Below are positions 3,001-61,100 of a stretch of DNA of 64,000 nt, piece by piece (position 1 is the first letter of the stretch; the number at the start of each line of letters is the position of its first letter). A program made the translations under genes and the position numbers. The DNA is from Phallusia mammillata. Its lineage: Eukaryota. The notes beneath the pieces were generated by a model that saw only the letters and a list, made by a program, of their open reading frames with translations, was not told where the DNA came from and made no database searches. Location of the stretch: the NCBI GenBank assembly GCA_965637545.1, contig OZ281497.1, forward strand, positions 21,204,001 to 21,268,000, written 5' to 3'.

Positions 3001-5246
3001 TGGCCCAGTCATTACGATTGGGAAATTTTACTCCAGTTTCAGTCATGCGACATTGCTCATTAAAACTTTCCGCTTGCGTTCCATAATTGCGATCTTCTTC
3101 CAATCTCAATGCGTATTCCTATTTAGTATATTGTGACGCCGCAATCCACTCAAAATATACCGTGCCCGGTTCGTTTATCACGTGACCAGACAACGTGATT
3201 GTCTGCCCAATATCGATAATCGTGGTGCATTATATTACACAGTGTCTTTGAGATATTTTTGCCTGTTTGTGAAACTCTCCGGGTGAATTTCCATGGCACG
3301 CATTTCACGAGTTTCCGGTTTGAGCTCGATTCCTGTTATACGTCACTTCCGCTTACTGGGAATCTGTTGTTGAAGACATATGGAATTGAAATGACAAGAA
3401 ATTACGCGATAGCTTTGGCGTCGCGCGGGTCTTAGTTCTGTGACATCATGACTTAACACAGTGCCAGGATGGCCGTACGCCGTATTGTCTTAAAGTACAC
3501 GAACAAAGTTGCTCATAAGGGGATTCGCAATTTAACGTTCGAGATTTTTCGTCGTATTGATCCCGGTTTTTATGGACAAGGGCGTTTTGCAAAATTAGGA
3601 GGATGGTTTGACCTTAGTTCAACATACATCAGTTTATGTTTGTGGGCAAAACTATTTGTATTCTAAAGAATTGGTGTAAAAGTAGACCAAAATGAAAACA
3701 TGTTTGGGAGCCCTGATCAATTGAAAAACCTTTTCCAAGTTTACAGTGTTTTAAAAATATAGCTTGGTTCGGGTATACAGAAAACGAAATAAAATTCCTT
3801 TTCATTCCATGGGCATTATTTTGTTCTTGGGTGACCACTATAAAATTGTCAACTGCTTTGTTGATTTGGGCCGGTTTGCAAACGCCTAAAATCCAGTCTT
3901 CTGTTTTTACCTAAACAGTTTCATCGGTTTGCGGTGTGACACGTTACATAACTTATCATACCGTGTGATCTCCTAACCTACAGTTCCTAATCGTGAAGCT
4001 CAATTACAACGTCGTACCCTCGAGCTGTTGTACACCTGCTCTACATGTGGTTTTAGTGGTAGCTATGGACGCTTTTGGAAATAAATGGTGCGTCCTTGTT
4101 GTAATTAGACGGCCTAATCGGGACCAATTGTCGGGCTGTCGGGGTCGTTATTTCATTACCAGTCGTGGCCTTTTCCTACTTCCTAGGCAAAAAAACACAG
4201 GAAAACGTTAGTCGTGACCGAAGAAGACGTTGTGAGTTGAAGTAAACAAAAAAATCTCCAGTTTACAAAGCTGTCTGTTAATTTGTGTTCAATAACTGGA
4301 CTAAAACCAAACTAAAAGCCAAGGAAATAAAGAAGTTTGTGAATTTTTCTGACAACAAAAGCGTAAAGTTGATGGAAAACTGCTAGTTTGGACACTATAA
4401 GCCATGTTCAAATTGGGTGAAAATCGAGGTTTTACTTATCTCCTTTACGGGTCGCTTTTCCTAAAAACCGTAAACGTTCAAGTTTTGTTTTTTTCGCCAT
4501 TATTTCAAGGTTGGTCGATTTAACAAATCGATGTAAGGGACTCACGATAAATGGCACAGTTGATTGCAAGAAGCGATTTTCATCGATTAAATCGTCATTA
4601 GCCAACAGACTAACGTCCGTTATAATTAATTGCGACGCCCATCTTGGATTAGATGTGAAGCATGATGGTCAGGCGACAAAAAAGGCAGTGCGTGATGACC
4701 GACTTCTGGCATCGTTGAGACCTTGTTATCGTTTTTCTCACACGTAAAAAACATTTTTTTTTATTTAACTGTTCATCAATGACAATTGGGTATAGTAACA
4801 ATGCAAATAAAAATTTGACTTGACTTTAGGTTCCATGTTTACCAAAGCATGTTCAGTATGCCTGTTGGTGTAAAATGTACCACCGGATAAGAACCTCGAG
4901 TTCTAAAAATAAATTGGCATCCCTGAACAATGACACAGCGAACCTTTGTAGGTGGGGTGAAAAAAACCTTTATGGCGTCTGAATTAAACGTTTTTTGTTC
5001 GTGTTCTGCTAAAGATGGCTGGGTCGTACTGTTTCAACACATTTTGAAAACCGCAATCTGCTGCGTAATGTTGTGACGTAGCGCCGTCACGGTGATGATG
5101 CTCTTTTTGGGGCGGGCTGCTTGGGCGATGAACCGTGGAGAAAATCCATGTTGCACCAATAATCGCTTCTTTATGTAATCCGTGGCATGTAAATGCGCTT
5201 TTGGCATGTTTCAACATTTCAAAAGACGCGTTGAGCTGCTGACTTG

Positions 5247-5292
5247 GCACGAGGGCACGTGATTTGGTCATGGCGACACGTGAGGTCACGTG
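5247..5292. promoter_or_regulatory. Cluster of bHLH sites (three CACGTG E-boxes plus a CACGAG N-box) in a GC-rich island
   Basis: CACGTG at 5256-5261, 5277-5282 and 5287-5292, CACGAG just upstream, inside a locally GC/CpG-rich segment (about 5050-5720). Function is inferred. Confidence 0.35.
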
Positions 5293-5769
5293 AGCGCGAC
5301 TCAACGCACCCTGTTGACACCAGAATGTTTCCCACCCGATTTCGCCACAAAAGTCAGCTAACCGGCGGGTTTTCGGCGATTGGCAGACGGCAGGCCGTGT
5401 TCACACGAGAACTGCTCAGTTGCTGTGCAAATTACGCGTAGAATAATATGCCCACAGCGCGAACAATCGCTTCCTGCGTTAATACACAGTCGTCGTTCGG
5501 CAGGAAACGTACAGAGTGTGCCACGTAAGCCCGGGCGGTACTGGTGTTTCTCTACAGACAGATAATGCCTGTGTGTTTTGCGACCTAATCACGCGCAAGC
5601 ATTTGTTACCGCGAACTGTTGACTTACCAGCTCAACCAGCCGCCGCGTTCCACTGAGCGAGATCGCCAATAAACTCGTGGACAAACGCTTTGGTGCCTTT
5701 CGCCGATGTCGTTACACCTATATGCCTGTAACACGTTTTTTGCTATGCTGTTGTACAAATGTAGACTCA

Positions 5770-8966: not shown

Positions 8967-11900
8967 GCAAGTGGATGGACATGAACAACGACATATTGTA
9001 CGAGGATGTGAATCCTATTGCTCCGAATCTCAACAGTCATCTCTCACCACTGCTCGGAGAGTTTGCGCGTGACCGCTATTCGCGCAAAGTCTTTGTAGGC
9101 GGCCTTCCACCGGACATAGACGAAGGTCAGTAGTAAAAAATCGGTTCAGTGTAATTTTGTCGCATGGTATTGACTTCAGTTGAGGAATGATCGTGTTTGT
9201 GAAGAAACTGTTGCTTTTTTTCTAATTTTAATTCCTTTTATTGCTCTCTATAGACACTGAAGATGCTTTTTAGCGAACTTAATTTGTTTTTATAACACTG
9301 TCATATGTTAACCTGGAAATAAACATTTTCCAAACTTGTGGTATTGACTTCCTATACATTTTCACAGCATTGTAGATTGTATACCACAATGTACCCCGAC
9401 TGTTTGTGTATGAGGCTATAAATTTTACTTTCCAATTTTCCTGTAACGGCGGTTACAATGTGGTTGTCTTTTACACAAAAATCCATGTAGATTTAAAATT
9501 ACATAACCCTCAATCTAGTCAATATACGGAGGTATTTGCAATCGTTATTTCGTTATAATATGCAAAATATTTTACTGTGTTATGCAACGAAATTGCAAAA
9601 ATAAGGGCATAAGGGATTATGGTTTGGTGTTATATTCATTTACTGCCTTGTTTGAGTAAACTGTTATCCTATAAATACAATTCGCTTGTTTTGCAGAAGA
9701 GATTAAGACAAGTTTTAAGCGCTTTGGGCCACTGGTTGTGGATTGGCCCCACAAGGCTGAAAGCAAGTCATATTTTCCACCAAAAGGTTAGTCAAGTTTT
9801 TTTTACTAGTTTATTGCATGTTCTGTCGTAAAGAACATTTTTTGGATGCACACTTGAACATCATGCCTGCAGTGTGTGTTAGACTCGAACGCTAAAATGT
9901 TGGAAGCCAAGAGTATTTATAACCAGTATTTCCTGATAAATCTTTTGCAAAAGAATACAAACCTAACCGCTGTTGATTTACTCCACACTTTGTTGAAGTA
10001 CAGTGGAATGTAAGTCATGCTGACAATATGTGTTGTGTTATTACTGCGCATGTTTTGCCATCGTTAATGCAAACAGCCTTTGTTTCAACTGTTGCCATCA
10101 TGTCATCAGCCATTACAAAACCCACAAAACCCTCTTTAACGTGTCGCTGTAGCTGGATAAAGGCTGTAGAGTGGCCTAAACCACACAGATGTTGCTTTGA
10201 AGTTAAATACAAGAGCTGGCTCTTCCCCACTGTTCGTCCCATTGGGCTTCGGCTTCTGTGTGTTGTTATTGCCGTTGCTATAAGTTCGTGTTGTTTTTTT
10301 GCAGGGTATGCTTTCCTGTTGTTCCAAGAAGAGCTTTCCGTTCAGAATCTGATCGGGTGCTGCATGAAGGACGGCGACAAGCTGTACTTGCGCGTTTCCA
10401 GTCCCACGATTCGAGATAAACCCGTAAGTACGGTTGTGCACTTTAAGAGACTTCCTAAAACCAAGAATCCACGGTTCCAGATTGGAATAAACTACAATTG
10501 TGAAGAAGCTTTGGCACAATAAAAACAATCGGGCTTTTAATGCTATACGTTTGTACAATATATTCTTTAACGCTCAAACAAATTATATTCTTACCTATAT
10601 ATAAAAATATATATATATATACACGTTACCTATATAAAGACATTATACGATTGTAGCAATTTAGTGGTGGCCAGCCTTATGAATTTGGTGAATTAAAACG
10701 CTGACTTCAGCACTGAAATACGCTTTTTGATTTTAGACCTATTTTTGCTTTGTAAAGATGAGTTAAAAAAGAGGTAGGGCACAACTGGTCGATAATGACA
10801 AAAAGCGCCGTAGCTATACCGTATTTACGAGTACCGTTGCTTACAATAGCATAATTCTGTCTTTGACCGATATTCAATATCATCACCAACATGGTGTTTC
10901 ATATCTACTCATAACACTAGCCAGTAACCTTCGTCAATGGAATTAAACTATCGCTCTTGGTTAAGTTGTCGGTTAAACGTCATGCCTTGACATCAGTCAG
11001 GTTGGAACGGTGCCAAAAACCTGCGGTTGTGCGTTTACCGGCGTGCTTTCCCTTATTTGTGTGTTGTGCCGTGCGAATTTTTCTTGCCCTCGTAACCAAC
11101 GTCGTCGGGTATAAATATTTGATGGCAACAGGTGGTCCTGCCTCTGTGCCACGATACAAGGCGATGCTTCTACGTACACCGATCGAAACAGGAATATATG
11201 TCTGACGGAAAACTGACGCACGGCGAAAATCCGGGTCGGTGAGGTCGCCTAGGCTTGGGCGTTGGCTCTGGAAAAAACATGGCCGCGTCCAAACTTGCTA
11301 ATGTTGTTAGTACCATAAAGTAAAAAATTGTACTTTGTATGGTATATTTGTAAATTACACTTTACTATTTAGGAGGGGAATTGTTATGGGTTTGCTTGTG
11401 TCAGATAACTGCTATTTATTGCAACTCGTATTAAGTTTCCAAAACCTGTATAGCTGATGGTTTTCTGACAAATAAGAAGCCTTGTCATTGCCATAGGTCC
11501 GAATTCTAAAATTTAATGAAAATGATTTTTATTAGCCATGTTAATAACACTTCCTCTTTGTTCGCGTTAGCCTATACAGTTTGACCTTAATCGCGTCCTT
11601 TTCTCGAATGCAATAACTTTAACCAGAGCTTCCTACCAAAATGACGTCATTGTGACAATATATCTTCCTTGATCCCGCGCTCGATCCACCCGGAAGTGAC
11701 GATTTCCTTCCTGGCGATATCCCACAATGCACTCGGTCATACGACACCATTTGGCTTGATTGCAAAAAATTAACACTATCAAATGCCACAGAATTGTTTT
11801 TAAATGTACGACCACGTGCCTTAAATCATGGCGTATGCTCAGTGGCAAAGTTAGACTGTCTCGTGACAGCCGTTAATGCACAATGTGGCCGTTCACGTTT

Positions 11901-53961: not shown

Positions 53962-54456
53962 ACGGGCTTGCGCTGTCCAAACTAATTTCTACCTTATGCA
54001 AAATCGTGTTGTTTATAATTTATAACCGTTCCACTTTGTACTAATTTTATTTCATCTACATAAGTGCAATGTTTGCTTCGAAGAATTGACTTGAACTGCA
54101 AGTGATTGAAGACCGACCCCAAAAGGAAAGTGTTGGCAAAAAGAGAGCATGTGTATGTAGCAAAAAAAGCGGTACCCCACTTTGTATTTTGTAAATTTGT
54201 GATTTGCAGTATATAACGAAAGCTCATGGTTGAAATCACGAAATAAACTAATCTTAAAGATGAACACATGGTATTGCAATATAATTTGCAACTTAAAAAA
54301 ATGTTGGCCATGGTGTGAGCCAGTTTCCTTTGTGGTGTATGCCCACTTATGGCATCGCACAGAATAGATGAGGCATGGGTTTTTACCCTGTTACCCCAAC
54401 AACATGTAGTGCCGTCGTATGGCTACACTAATCAATACGGCCGATCTCTTGTCACC

Positions 54457-54506
54457 AGCTGCACTGATGATACCGTATAGGTCTAAACAGTACACTGTCT
54501 GCAGCT
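54457..54506 (+). ncRNA. Type I hammerhead ribozyme relic (HHR3) with G12 to U change
   Basis: AGCTGCA CTGATGA T ACC-gtata-GGT C TAAA CAG-taca-CTG TC TGCAGCT. Perfect 7-bp stem I, 4-bp stem III, GUC triplet, but TAAA replaces GAAA and G10.1 is missing. Confidence 0.75.
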
Positions 54507-55156
54507 TATAAAAACTTTTGTTTGCAAAAACTATAAGCACTCCGACGTTTCTCTAATTTCCAACGATACTGACAAATCATATATTTTAGACCAGGGCGCT
54601 ACGCACAACCGTCTTATAATGCATCATGTATATTCAGCTTATGTTTGTGGGTATTAAGGCTAAAAAATCATGAATAACACTTGTTTCAGAGTAATCAGCC
54701 TATATCGTACTCCCTAAAAGAAAAATTGATCAAAACATTAACGTACAACAGCGGCGTTGGAAATGTTTCAATTTCAATTATTTCCGAAGCAATAAATAAA
54801 ATAACGTTGAAGCCGTTACTTCAAACAAATGTAGTTTTCTATACATAATATACCATGAAAAGAGACACCTCTTATTTGACACTTTTTGTTGTTGATTATA
54901 TTATTAACATAACAATCTTATTGGTAGAATAACAGCTGACACATTCGCGTATAGACAGCGAAAGTCTGGAGTACAATCCTTACATGTAGCACGAATAACC
55001 AACACTTTTAAATAAAGTTCAATTTTATCAGTAGTTCGCCAAAGACAATAATAAACAAGTGCATTTGTAAGGTAAAAATTTGCGTCAGGTATAACTATTA
55101 TGTAGCAAAGACGCCAGTTTCTGGATATCTGATTGATTTATTATTTTCGGGTCTGT

Positions 55157-58100
55157 TCACAACTTTGATTGAGATTTGAAAAGCACTTCTAGCTTCTGTG
55201 CTAGAAATACGTTTCCCGTTGCTTCAATATTCCCCTTCAAAAACAGCTAGAATGCAAAAAAAACTTACATAAAAATTGTACTGATAAGCATTTAAAAAGA
55301 GTAATTACACAAACACTAACTTAATTAAAACCAACTAGTCATTTGGGGAAAATACAAAATATCTGTCGTGTGCAGTTGTACAAAACTTTTTTAATTTACT
55401 TCTTATAACGGTTCCTTTGCAACTTTTCGAGCAATCGCGGTCCAAGCCAAATATATTTGTGAAATTAAATGATTAACTAGATTCTATTTGAATAAGAACG
55501 ACTGAAGATGCGCTTTTGGGGTGAAATATATATCGTTAAACAACTTTGTTGACTGATTTTGATTAGGAAGCACGGTTGCTTCGTCAATTATTCTTACATA
55601 TCATTTTAAATATAATCAGTGATCGTCGACAAAAAAGATGCCTAACTACTTGCGGGAGATCCTGTACCAAACACTAAATGTCAGTTAACTAAACCCGGTT
55701 TTAATTATTTCTATTCCCACAACAAAGGTAATTTATTCCTATTCCCACAACAAAATGTAGGACGCATTTTGTTTACTGCAGTTTCGTAAGATTAACTTGC
55801 GTGCAAATGACTCAAGTTCAGTGCCGGATTAACCATTAGGCAAAGTAGGCACGTGCCTACAGGCCAGTCAAAAATCCAGGCCACTTTAAAATCAGGCAAC
55901 ACTGATAATTCTAATTTTTTAGTTGACAATCCCGATTTCCGGACCACTTATACATTGTGCCTACAGGCCTGCAGACCCTTAATCCAGCACTGCTCAAGCT
56001 CAATTTATTAAGTCAGAAATAAGATGAAAATAGTAATAAAATTGTTCTCGAATAATCGCATTTTGTGTTACTTGAAAATAAGAGAACAGCTGGTCTATTA
56101 TATTTAAAAATACACTTTCTTCATAAACCAACTTTTATACCTGGGTTACGTATTTTGCATTGTTACGTCATCACTTGCCTTTTTGGGGTTAGTAGTCCCT
56201 TTGAATAGTTCGATCACATCTTCTTCTGCTATAGTAATAGTACAATCAGCGTTGGCAGCTTTTCCGCGGACTATTTTACCACGTCCACTCAACAGGTCCA
56301 TTTCTGCAGCAAAAACAAAAAATATTTTTTCACCATATACTTACTATTTTTGACTTCCCTTTATGTCAAATAAAAATATCATGGGCGCCGGCAGAAGAAT
56401 TTGCAAGTTTGTGAGGACAAATACTTTTACAAAGCCTACATACTTCATGGATGGATTACGATAAAGCTGAAACATTCTACGATGTAAAAAATTCCCCAGC
56501 ACGTCCATTACGTGATACCATTTTGTTTGTTCGAAACACAGTAACGGCAGAATATAGCCATTTTAGGGTATACATTGAAATATCAAAGTGGAAGGGGAAG
56601 GTTCTCGGTTTTGCAGAAAAGCTGACTTTATTTTTGAGCTCAGACCATGAGTGCGCAAACTTCTCGCTGTGACGTTTGCATCATAGAATTCTAAATCTAG
56701 ACTTGTATGTAAGCATCGCAGATACATTTTTCACCAACGGCCGCCCAGTGTCTTGTTTTTGTTGATAAAATATTGAAGAAAAATAGGTTCGTCTCATATA
56801 TGTACTATCTAATTGCGCCAGGATTAATTTCTAACTTAATCCACATATTAAGCTGAATAGTCTAACGATCTGTCCTTATTGCTTATGACGTCACCATCGA
56901 CCTTGTGACGCTTGAATTGGTGCCTTTTTTCGCAACTGTGGCTCACAATGGGTGTACAAAAAGTTGGACACATCTGCCTACTGGGCTGACAATACTCTTT
57001 TCAGGTTGTGCACCCCCGGCTTAGAAAGACCTCCTGGCTTGCAGTACACACTCACCCCATTCTCTTGCCACTTTTCCATCCGTTGTGATGTACCATTGGA
57101 AAATCGCGTTGACCTTTTTCACGATCTCTGGAGTCAAAGTTTTGGCAGTTTCCTCGAAAAACGCGTCGCTCGCCAAAGAAGTCGAAGGTCCCTGCTAGGC
57201 AGCAATACAGATATTTTTGTTCACAATGTTTTAGCACATATACATGAAGTTACCGCAATTCCTTTACTATCAGATTGTATGTGACTATTACTAATTACCG
57301 TTTATCGACAGATTTCCTTTGGGTTATTATGCTTTAACTGTGTAGAAAAGTGATTCTAAACCTTTTGTGGTGGAGCCACTAAAATTTGGCGTTAACTAAT
57401 AGCGCAAAGTTTTGGCGACCCAAATCTTAAAATAAATTATTTCAATGTCACAGAGCCTTCCTTGAACCGCTATACTTGACAGCCAAACCAAAGCAAATAA
57501 CGTACTATTTTTGGGTCGTGACTGAGGACTGAAGAAGCACTGTTGCAGAGCCAGAAGATACATAAAACTTGTAAACAGTCAGTTGACCCCTAAACTATAA
57601 TATACGCCTTGTAGTGACGGTGCATCTGCAACGCGTTTAGCTTTCATCCACCAATTGTGCCCTCCATTTTTATGCGCTCCAAAACGTTTCACCGTTGCGC
57701 AGCTATTTACAGCTTGGTGATTGTTTTAGTGCAGTGGTTCACAACCTCTTTGTTGCTACAGTACAGAACTTTATTGAGATTTAGAACTGTGAATGTTGAT
57801 TAAAATGCTGCGCAAAAAGTATAATAATGTATAATGCAAGAAACGAAAAACATAAAGAGACTTACGAAAAATTACGTTGGCGGTCCTCTGGCGTATAAAA
57901 TTTATAAAAGGGGTCCGTGACTACAGAAAGGTTGGGAAGTGTAATTGTGTCGCTATGTTGTCTTTCACCAAGCGAAATAAACTCAACAACTCATATCAAC
58001 CAGTTTCGAGACCAGAGAACAAGTTATTGCCTATAGTCACAATCAAAACCGTATTTTAAACAGAAACCTTTATTTTATAAATTAATAATCGGGATATCAG

Positions 58101-61100
58101 TCATAGCCGCTAAAGATACCTCCTTTGGTGCACTAGAAGTTGGTGCTGCATCAGTGTTAAGATCAACGTAAGCTCCGGTCAAGCACGCCTTACCGCTCTC
58201 TGCTACCACCGTCCGGAAAAACACACGACTTCCTTCTTTCCACATTTCAGTGCGAAGGGTTTGTCCTGGAATAACCGGAGATGCAAAACGAACCTAAAGC
58301 AAAAAAAATACCGCTAAAAATTGTTTGAAACATTCCAATGTAATATATGTGGGTACTGTGATGGGATTTTAGGCAGTCAAATTTCTTAACAAATATCCCA
58401 CACATGTAAATAAAAGTTTTCTTCATTTAAAGTCGGGATTTGTTTGAGTTTTTTTACGAACCTATAATTCATTTGAACGCCTATGATGGTTTTACACAGT
58501 TAAATATGTTTTGCGTACATTTTCACCGACATTGGGCCTATGTGTTTACACTTTTGCTTTTAAATACTGATGATGCTATAAAGGCGAAATATATGTATCG
58601 CAAAATATAAAGGATGAATGACTTGATATTTTTCATAAACTTCAATTAATTAAGATGCTGTTACATCATTTTATGATATAACACGGTATATAAGTCAAAG
58701 GAACATTTGAAATAAGCAACAAGAACTTGGTCACACAAATAGCCATAAACACTCGGAACCCTCATCCCTTTTATATTCGGTTATGTAGTAAAGCGCATTT
58801 GTCCAGTCAGCATCTCTAGGTGAATGGTCTTTTGTTTTTAGATCAACGTCTTTCAAAACGCGATTTCGTAGTATTTGGTTTGTACGCAATGTTTTATGAT
58901 TCGCAAGAACTGCTAACTAAAGTCGCATTATCGGTGCCAACTCAAGTGTAACTGAGAACTTCATCTCTCGAGTAAATGCCCTTCTCTCTCCTTTTTCAAA
59001 TATTGCTCTCTGGTTTTCAGTATATATGGACTGTAAGAGTTGGAGTTAATACTCCACTGTGCATTTCTCGTTTACGTTGTAGTTCGCTGAATTTCGTGTC
59101 TCTTTGCTAAATTTCGGTATTTTGCTAAATATAATTCTAACCATATAAAATGCAGTGGCGTTGCACTTTACTTCAGGATAGGCAACTGAGAATAAATAAG
59201 ACTCATCACAGTGGTAAAAGGAACTCACGAGCGACCTATTTTAATACGTAGCAATAATCACTTGACAATCCCGATTAGTTCACACTCTTATCGAATAAAC
59301 AGATACCAAGTTGATCGCAATATTTCTGGTGCCCCAATAGATGCGTTAATAAAATAAGCAACGAGCTGGGATATTCTAGTTTCAAGTTTAAAGTGTTAAG
59401 AACGCCTATGAAGTCTTTTTTTTTCTTTTAAACCAGTGGTTCACAAACTTTTTTATTATTTTTTCAAAACGGCCCCTTTGCCATTATTTCGAGGGCTCGC
59501 GGTCCTTAATGTGTATTTCAGAAAAACGAAAGTTGATTGCAGGATTTTAGCTAGTTATGCAAAATTGCGCATAACAAAGATCCAAAGACAGCATGTGACA
59601 TCACAGACAAGACAAAAACATTACGATTGTGCGCGAAAAATTACATTTTTGTTAATTGTAATGCAATAAAGGCTATTGTTTCGCAATGGATACAGTCGAT
59701 TCTCAATCCTACTTTGATTTAAACATATTTAGAGGCACAAACTGACTCCAAATAAGATTATAAAATTATATCAACCTTTTCGCGATCCCCCAAAAATTGC
59801 CTCACGGACCACAAAAGGACCGCGGACCCCAGTTTGAGAACCGCTGTTTTAAACGAATAAACAAACTCTCCAAGCTTTTATCAAATGCTTCGCGTTACAT
59901 AAAAATCGCACATTTTTAGCACATACCTTGACAGCTTTGATCATCTTAGGGTCGTTGTTTCCATACTGTTCCATTACATGTCGGGTGGAGAAGCCAAAGG
60001 AACAGAGCCCGTGCAAGATCGGCTCTTTGAAGCCACCCATAGCGGCAAAACCTGGGTCGATATGCAATGGATTGTGATCACCACTCAATCTATACAAGGC
60101 GGCTTGGTCGACGTTGGTCTTTTGCTCAATTACTGCGTCTGGTGCTCGCGTTGGTGGTGATACCACAGTCTGGTATATAAATATAAATTAGCTTTTTATT
60201 TGTGCAGATATGCTTTGACAGCTCAAAAGTTTTAGATTCCTCCCCCCAAAAAAACGATAGAAAAACGCATACTTAATTTTGAGCGTAAGCTTGCTCTCGA
60301 CCCAACATTTTATTCCTACGCGTCTTGAGAAAATATGTTTTGCGTGCACGCACATAAAGAACTATAGCGTTGTATATATTATAGATATGCAAAATCTTTT
60401 AAAGAAGGTTTGGTTATAGCACTTTTTTTATTTTTTAGATTTAATATGTTTCACGCTTTACTTTGCACTAAGTAATAAAAATCCGTTTTAAACGCTCGTT
60501 CGTTGTAGATTTGTCTAAATGTGTTTGGAAAGTTAACAGTTCAACACAGAAGACTCCATTTTCCCGGTAATATACCGGATGCGTACAAAAGCGTAAGCTC
60601 TGGGCAAGCACAAGCATATGGGTACAGCCCTTTGTGGACAACAAAAAAACTGCATGAGCAAACCCACGTAATTTTACCTTCTGCTTATCGGATGTTCTCT
60701 GTCCCCGAAAGCCACCAGCTCCAATTATATACGTCACAAATTGATTTAAACAAACTTTATCACCTGATTCGTCAAACGTTTCAGCTGTAAAAACAAACCG
60801 TTTTCTTTTTTGAGCTTTAAATGGATTGTAAATGTTTAAAACTAGCGTTGAAATTTGTCAATGCGGTTCCGATTTTTTCAGTTTTTAATTTGTTACAACA
60901 GTATGTTAAATTTACCGAATAAACAAAAAAGTCTATGAAATATGCTTGGTAACAAAACTAAAAGTTTAGCAGTCTGTTATAGTTTTTTTAATGTGTGTGT
61001 GTCAAATTCTTTGGTGTTTACTTTAAAGTTTGTTGCAAGGAACCAAGTGCGTTGCACCCTAACTCACCATTGACAATCAGTACGCAACCAGAGCCCTTGT

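Follow-up and report, generated by a model that had tools for sequence, protein, structure and literature searches.

Penelope of Drosophila virilis contains a spliceosomal intron, the 3' end of which has been mapped to the 5' end of helix I in the hammerhead ribozyme that the element carries (Cervera & de la Pena 2014, PMC4209133). The minimal hammerheads of Penelope-like elements (PLEs) have been reported to cleave poorly in vitro, probably acting as dimers (PMC4209133). The published anatomy of PLEs comprises an inverted, truncated copy, a one-sided tail that is a hallmark of these elements, and two internal start sites for the reverse transcriptase (RT) downstream of the hammerhead (Craig et al. 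2021, PMC8557442; Frangieh et al. 2024, PMC11167929). The retention of introns by PLEs raises an open question, namely whether sense or antisense RNA is the template (PMC3846280). Here we describe a hammerhead that is fused to a 16-nt spliced leader (SL) in a 64,000-nucleotide stretch of the genome of the tunicate Phallusia mammillata (C4:21204001-21268000 of a 240-Mb assembly; this whole stretch is called the window). We estimate a probability of roughly 0.87 that the insert, of roughly 206 bases, is a DNA copy of a PLE RNA that had been capped with the SL by host trans-splicing just 5' of the hammerhead.

The fly and tunicate splice sites are alike in that each lies exactly at the 5' end of helix I. 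However, the fly site closes a cis-spliced intron, whereas at the tunicate site the SL appears to be added in trans, and DNA copies of the spliced form have been made hundreds of times over. Insertions in this genome share with described PLEs (PMC8557442, PMC11167929) the inverted 5'-truncated arms, short duplications and one-sided tail, as well as two start sites downstream of the hammerhead and an apparently uncleaved RNA template. They differ in that the end sites are about 87 nt apart, compared with 30-40 nt, that main and inverted arms systematically use different sites, and that one arm or both carry the SL as a mark of the RNA's 5' end.

Like the metazoan non-LTR retrozymes (LTR, long terminal repeat; Cervera & de la Pena 2020, PMC7229834; preprint 10.64898/2026.07.22.740005), the SL-tagged copies are short, non-autonomous type I hammerhead units that would depend on PLE machinery. 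Retrozymes, however, form tandem arrays and are thought to spread via circular RNA after self-cleavage, whereas the window copy is a single dispersed unit that begins at a probable trans-splice junction and whose cleavage site is uncut. It has no tandem partner, and the nearest other hammerheads belong to other families. In the absence of a tandem array, we rejected its classification as a retrozyme in the strict sense.

Some retroelements, such as NeSL and SLACS/CRE, insert into SL RNA genes. The present case resembles them in joining an SL to a retroelement, but here RNA splicing would supply the SL, and the copies are scattered over unrelated sites. An SL-gene-targeting element was considered and rejected, as no SL-gene flank or intron is attached to the fused copies that were read. 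SL relics are known from dinoflagellates, and an extra 5' G from L1 and processed pseudogenes; there, as here, an SL or cap trace at the 5' end marks a mature RNA template. In the tunicate, however, that template would be the ribozyme-bearing RNA of a retrotransposon and the enzyme a PLE RT, and there is no poly(A) tail. In the literature on SLs with hammerheads, Penelope or retrotransposons in tunicates and rotifers, we found no published SL-tagged PLE or hammerhead copies, although coverage was incomplete and novelty is unproven.

The fused leader and hammerhead

The insert reads, in order, TTAACTA, G, ATTCTATTTGAATAAG and AACGA-CTGAAGA-T-GCGCTTTTGGGGT-GAAA-TATATA-TCGTT, and TTAACTA recurs at its right end (Table 1). 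The SL abuts the hammerhead without a gap, and no GT donor follows it. An earlier note on this DNA had listed these features, and all are seen where it placed them. The 16-mer occurs only once in the window, even with two mismatches allowed, a tolerance at which shuffled sequences gave a mean of 0.11 matches. Positions 55497-55686 are part of the 3' tail of a PLE whose open reading frame (ORF) encodes an RT and a GIY-YIG domain. We queried the genome with the 194-nt stretch 55497-55690, although the repeat proper ends by 55686, and obtained 54 or more matches. The window copy consists of one arm, with a duplication, and ends at the distal of two end sites found in this family. The retrocopy occupies 55480-55684, or extends to 55686, depending on the reading of the right TTAACTA. 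A unit resembling a miniature inverted-repeat transposable element (MITE), with inverted ends CAGTGCCGGATTAA / TTAATCCAGCACTG, lies just to the right of the insert, at about 55820-55993.

The genome has 3179 copies of the 16-mer followed by GT. SL RNA genes are arranged in tandem with a 553-bp unit, in long arrays on C3, and consist of the 16-mer exon followed by GTAAG. One such array extends from about 11.108 to at least 11.147 Mb (sampled as L070, G000:C3:11108000-11109700). A gene unit reads ..cctcaaaacggc|ATTCTATTTGAATAAG|GTAAGCATCATACTCCTCGGAGTAACTTTTTTCC.., which gives the exon, a consensus donor, a hairpin and a U-rich stretch, and the base immediately 5' of the exon is C, not G. The unit, when scanned against Rfam, matched no family. 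The 16-mer is identical to the published SL of Ciona (PMC1488885). By its agreement with the SL RNA genes and with that published leader, the 16-mer is the species' own SL, as the earlier note had supposed. At six further loci (L061-L066, around position 1501 of each), the SL precedes unrelated sequences that happen to begin with GT. In L061, a stretch resembling a 5' untranslated region and an ATG follow the SL, and G or TG often precedes the SL in the six. These look like SL-tagged retrocopies of other trans-spliced RNAs.

The core boxes CUGANGA and GAAA are present in the type I order, as in the minimal hammerheads of PLEs (PMC4209133). To compare them, we parsed 30 SL-linked motifs. The extra nucleotide is U in 28 of these 30, including the window copy, and all have helix II as a hairpin and, following GAAA, a palindromic UAUAUA as a small helix III/loop 3. 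Helix I occurs with seven pairings across families (AAA/UUU, GAA/UUC, AUA/UAU, ACA/UGU, ACGA/UCGU, AACGA/UCGUU and AGCGA/UCGUU), and it is this covariation, not fold energy, that supports the structure. These features match those listed for PLE minimal hammerheads (PMC4209133), with one difference: the 10.1-11.1 pair that closes helix II is G-U in the window's family, not G-C. Most of the parsed families have G-C, as does L074 of the related AGCGA group. The family consensus for helix II is GCCC..GGGGT; the window copy has GCGC, which creates one internal mismatch and, on pairing grounds, weakens the helix. Cleavage is predicted after 55532. Within the retrocopies this site is uncut, and the template RNAs would therefore not have been cut by their own hammerhead. 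An Anolis PLE in vitro likewise used uncleaved RNA as template (PMC11167929). In nearly every family, A9, the bulged U and G10.1 together spell ATG; the Anolis PLE ORF starts at the equivalent place, and in the window's family this ATG opens a frame of only 14 codons.

The parent element and its splice acceptor

In about 29 copies that we inspected, the hammerhead is preceded not by the SL but by a conserved sequence, ..gttcattgcttggtttgttttacttttacacccgttgtttcacag|AACGACTGA, in which a pyrimidine-rich tract ends with CAG. The parent junction reads ..gtttgttttacttttacacccgttgtttcacag|AACGACTGA, with ttgtttcacag directly before the junction. Exact-pattern counts for the family gave 41 CAG-type members among 51, the other 10 being of AAG type; these 51 leave out the window copy, owing to its helix II change. 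Every AAG-type member inspected bears the SL. In the window copy, as well as in L002, L003, L025 (two arms), L028 and L071-L076, the SL replaces everything upstream of the AG. The junction is thus the AG after a pyrimidine tract in the unspliced genomic source, as for SL trans-splice sites. Because the parents have an acceptor where the copies have the SL, trans-splicing is favored. The earlier note had proposed that parental copies should carry a genomic AG at this place, and they do.

The same exchange of acceptor for SL occurs in four further families (ATA, GAA, ACGA and ACA), whose parents were read in a subset of loci and in the window (Table 1). Its occurrence in five families supports the earlier note's model of SL trans-splicing followed by reverse transcription. 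That note had also pointed to acceptor-like YAG trinucleotides beside two other hammerheads of the window. For the one at 9248-9287 this holds, as it is a parent-type copy with a TAG acceptor. For the other (from 54453, + strand; CACCAG|CTGCA-CTGATGA..), there is no GAAA box in register, and its status as a hammerhead is doubtful. At the ATA-type hammerhead at 58564-58598, the tract ending in AA may be a decayed acceptor.

The PLE at L069 has a single 905-aa ORF, with RVT_1 at residues 423-572 followed by GIY-YIG at 797-830, the order of RT and C-terminal endonuclease that characterizes EN+ PLEs. The neighbors of this ORF in the Atlas are animal RT/GIY-YIG clusters. Downstream of the stop come about 360 nt (excluding a 480-nt MITE), the acceptor, the hammerhead and the end of the element, an order that physically ties the hammerhead to the PLE ORF. 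In a typical insertion, two arms lie head to head between the copies of a duplication. The ORF-carrying main arm stops at family positions of about 96-103, and the inverted 5'-truncated arm at about 184-190. Short arms of two-arm insertions terminate at ..CAATTATTCT(TACAT), where the main arms of L069 and L077 also end, and long arms terminate, like the window copy, at ..ACACTAAATGTCA(G). By its coding content and insertion anatomy, the parent is a Penelope-like element. A search for junctions like those of tandem pseudo-LTRs (the proximal end site and then an ORF start within 30 nt) found none.

The 480-nt difference between the arms of L069 was considered as a spliced intron and rejected. 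It is a MITE (3376-3854) with terminal inverted repeats (CAGTGCTCTT / AAGAGCACTG), its own duplication (CTTAGAC) and an internal 65-bp tandem duplication. Locus L068 contains, at 3021-5756 (+ strand), a 911-aa gag/protease/integrase ORF of an LTR retrotransposon that adjoins PLE fragments.

Table 1. Positions of the parts of the SL-hammerhead insert, and of hammerheads and acceptors compared with it (window positions unless a locus or run is named)
Feature	Location	Strand	Remarks
Left copy of putative target-site duplication, TTAACTA	55473-55479	+	Repeated at 55685-55691
Extra G between duplication and SL, read as cap copy	55480	+	G excess in full-length fusions; C in SL RNA gene
16-nt SL exon, ATTCTATTTGAATAAG	55481-55496	+	Exact match; same as SL RNA gene exon and published Ciona SL
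Minimal type I Penelope-type hammerhead	55497-55537	+	Core boxes; helix I covariation across families
Helix I, 5' strand	55497-55501		
CUGAAGA box	55502-55508		
Bulged U	55509		
Helix II	55510-55522		
GAAA box	55523-55526		
Palindromic UAUAUA	55527-55532		
Helix I, 3' strand	55533-55537		
Element body to proximal end site (family positions about 96-103)	55538-55599	+	ORF-bearing main arms of parent stop here
Tail extension to distal end site (family positions about 184-190)	55600-55684	+	Long arms and window copy end there
Right copy of TTAACTA	55685-55691	+	Partly perhaps element sequence or microhomology, by comparison with other copies
Parent-type (unspliced) ACA-family copy, ..ttattgctctctatag|ACA-CTGAAGA..	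9248-9287	+	Pyrimidine tract and TAG acceptor; GAAA box decayed to GAAC
ATA-type PLE hammerhead lacking SL	58564-58598	+	Upstream pyrimidine tract ends AA, not AG
ATA-family acceptor, ..ctgcttgttcgtag|ATACTGACGA (tag)	L068:6194		Matched by SL+ATACTGACGA copies
GAA-family acceptor, ..ggttttacag|GAACTGACGA	L072:1055		Matched by SL+GAACTGACGA copies
ACGA-family acceptor, ..tgtttgacag|ACGACTGATGA	Loose end of contig in run X11		Matched by SL+ACGACTGATGA copies
ACA-family acceptor, ..ttattgctctctatag|ACACTGAAGA (tatag)	9248		Matched by SL+ACACTGAAGA copies (L046)

Genomic scale, putative cap traces and RNA

A search of the genome for TTTGAATAAG followed within 0-8 nt by CTGANGA found 241 matches, and a control search with the reversed pattern found none. 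SL-hammerhead fusions thus have many further genomic examples, and the 16-mer is lacking from the acceptor-bearing parents; on both points the findings go against what the earlier note had named as grounds for abandoning its model.

A full-length SL is present in 111 fusions; the base before it is G in 61 of these and another base in 50. Given that G makes up 18.8% of the window, this excess has a P of about 2e-17, provided that the copies are independent. In the SL gene, C occupies this position, and the extra G is therefore most readily explained as copied from the cap, a possibility raised in the earlier note that now has this statistical support. T precedes the G in 29 of the 61 (giving TG), mildly above expectation, and L071 has its duplication, then TTG, and then the SL.

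The flanks of the window copy have no similarity to those of L002, which is 280 kb away, and the two were accordingly treated as separate events and not as one that was duplicated. The duplications also differ among copies: TTAACTA in the window, TAAACTAATAG in L002, TGTAAA in L003, GATTAGGGGTCG in L028, ACTATTGTG in L071 and ATTTTTAATTTTA in L025. Those of other SL copies of the family are 6-13 bp long. Judged by flanks and duplications, the SL copies are independent insertions. In the head-to-head insertions L025 and L042, both arms start with the SL, one SL being truncated. In L032 and L033 (about 1500-1560), within head-to-head arms, a partial, diverged SL lies directly before the full SL (..TCTATTGAATAAG|ATTCTATTTGAATAAG|CAACTGATGA). 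This double SL may result from a template jump between SL-capped RNAs.

For evidence at the RNA level, contigs from four public runs were compared with L003:1442-1741. Runs X1 and X5 were guessed to be RNA. The unique flanks of L003 are uncovered in them and covered in the DNA-like run X9. Both X1 and X5 contain the unspliced form, in loose ends that read ..TTTTACACCCGTTGTTTCAC before the AG. Record 10 of X5 (214 nt) consists of two letters, G, the full SL, family positions 1-101 and 94 nt of flank beginning with TTTAGCGATATGATTAAAAGG, and has the parent-type T at position 1559. The flank is unique in the genome (C3:6733398; L077), and the DNA there has the acceptor form, ..ttgtttcacag|AACGA, not the SL. 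The simplest reading of this contig is a trans-spliced read-through transcript of the L077 locus, which is supportive but not decisive.

Routes to the fusion and their meaning

From the joining of the SL at an AG acceptor, the extra G, the duplications, the PLE parentage and the SL tags on both arms, we infer trans-splicing of a sense transcript, followed by RT start and copying. In this pathway, the 3' tail of the parent would present its pyrimidine tract and CAG 3' splice site directly at the 5' end of helix I. The host spliceosome would trans-splice the capped 16-nt SL to this acceptor in a sense PLE transcript, giving an RNA that consists of the SL, the hammerhead and a tail of about 150 nt, and the hammerhead would leave this RNA uncut. 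On a nicked target (TTAACTA), the PLE RT would then begin synthesis at its distal internal start site, one of two, and copy the RNA to its 5' end, including the cap, which would yield the extra G; the cDNA would then be integrated. The same pathway could account for at least 241 SL-hammerhead fusions from several PLE families in one genome. The window copy is very probably a dead-on-arrival retrocopy produced by PLE machinery and is probably inert, because ORF, promoter and acceptor are all absent. Since both arms of L025 and L042 start with the SL, both would have been copied from the 5' ends of capped sense RNAs. This arrangement fits cleavage and extension of both target strands (PMC11167929), not antisense self-priming (PMC3846280).

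The SL and the hammerhead could also have been joined during reverse transcription, if the PLE RT, having copied a PLE RNA to its 5' end, switched to an SL-bearing RNA or to free SL RNA as template. PLE insertions do have signs of template jumps, namely head-to-head arms and filler nucleotides such as aaacgatatattg in L003, and the partial SL before the full SL in L032 and L033 can be counted among them. Yet the junction falls exactly after the acceptor AG in five families with different helix I sequences, and a jump has no reason to select that base. Moreover, intron sequence (GTAAGC..) would be expected after a jump onto free SL RNA, but none is seen, and in the X5 contig the SL is linked to a locus at which the DNA shows the acceptor. 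We therefore consider a chimeric cDNA improbable. The earlier note's own alternative, in which the precise target of a hammerhead element was the exon/intron boundary of an SL RNA gene, parts of which were later dispersed, fares worse. More than 3000 SL+GT sites in the genome offer possible targets, and SL genes are targeted by retroelements elsewhere (NeSL, SLACS/CRE). However, the conserved upstream sequence of these genes (..cctcaaaacggc) never precedes the SL in the fused copies read; in its place are unique flanks, the extra G and duplications that flank the SL directly. Acceptor-bearing parents explain the junction, and each of several families would otherwise need its own precise insertion, which makes this route very improbable. 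That the 16-mer is native to the element, or a chance or convergent match unrelated to splicing, is the least credible account. The AT-rich composition of the SL is the one point in its favor, and against it stand the 41 of 51 exact family members that lack the SL and have a different conserved upstream sequence, the 241 fusions compared with none for the reversed control, and the identity of the 16-mer with the SL gene exon.

Several results weigh against our preferred reading, in which an SL-trans-spliced PLE RNA was copied into DNA. Rfam gave no hammerhead match in the window at gathering thresholds, or in 54000-57000 at E-values up to 10. Fold z-scores were unremarkable; the minimum-energy fold places helices I and II as expected, but is no better than those of shuffled sequences. 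The earlier note's description of the hammerhead as intact goes too far, in view of the helix II mismatch (GCGC in place of GCCC) and the negative Rfam result. The RVT_1 and GIY-YIG matches of L069 are both under Pfam's cut-offs, and a sequence search of the PDB with the PLE ORF gave no relative. RNA support comes from one k-mer-assembled contig across a repeat, in a run that we only guess to be RNA. Between the SL junction and the locus-specific single-nucleotide polymorphism and flank, the repeat is longer than one 31-mer, so that a chimeric path is possible. As for the 7-bp target-site duplication that the earlier note proposed, both copies of TTAACTA are present. However, other family copies run on as ..AAATGTCAGTTTAC or ..GTCAGTCAAC past the window copy's right end, and up to 5 nt of the right-hand copy may therefore be element sequence or priming microhomology. 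Finally, no full-length SL-tagged PLE was found, and no SL lies within 30 nt upstream of the ORF ATG. Consequently, trans-splicing that serves the element cannot be told apart from trans-splicing as a by-product.

A broader interpretation can be offered, though we think it less likely than not. The 3' splice site at helix I may function as a module conserved among PLEs, which marks the end of a cis-spliced intron in flies and recruits the capped SL in hosts that trans-splice, perhaps determining where the translated or copied RNA has its 5' end. SL-tagged units might then be a PLE-dependent, retrozyme-like, non-autonomous lineage and not only by-products, and both head-to-head arms might be copies of capped sense RNA.

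The movement of PLEs is poorly understood with regard to the template RNA, the formation of head-to-head arms and the role of the hammerhead and of retained introns. The SL is a natural tag of 5' ends, and it would indicate that sense RNAs with a cap, processed by the spliceosome, serve as templates up to and including the cap at the 5' end. Its presence on both arms bears on the question of sense versus antisense templates, and the location of a 3' splice site at helix I, shared by a fly PLE and no fewer than five tunicate families, suggests a connection between splicing and ribozyme that can be tested. For work on tunicates, the few hundred genomic copies of the SL can confound SL-based mapping of trans-splice sites and operons. 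The same copies are dated markers of trans-splicing in the germline.

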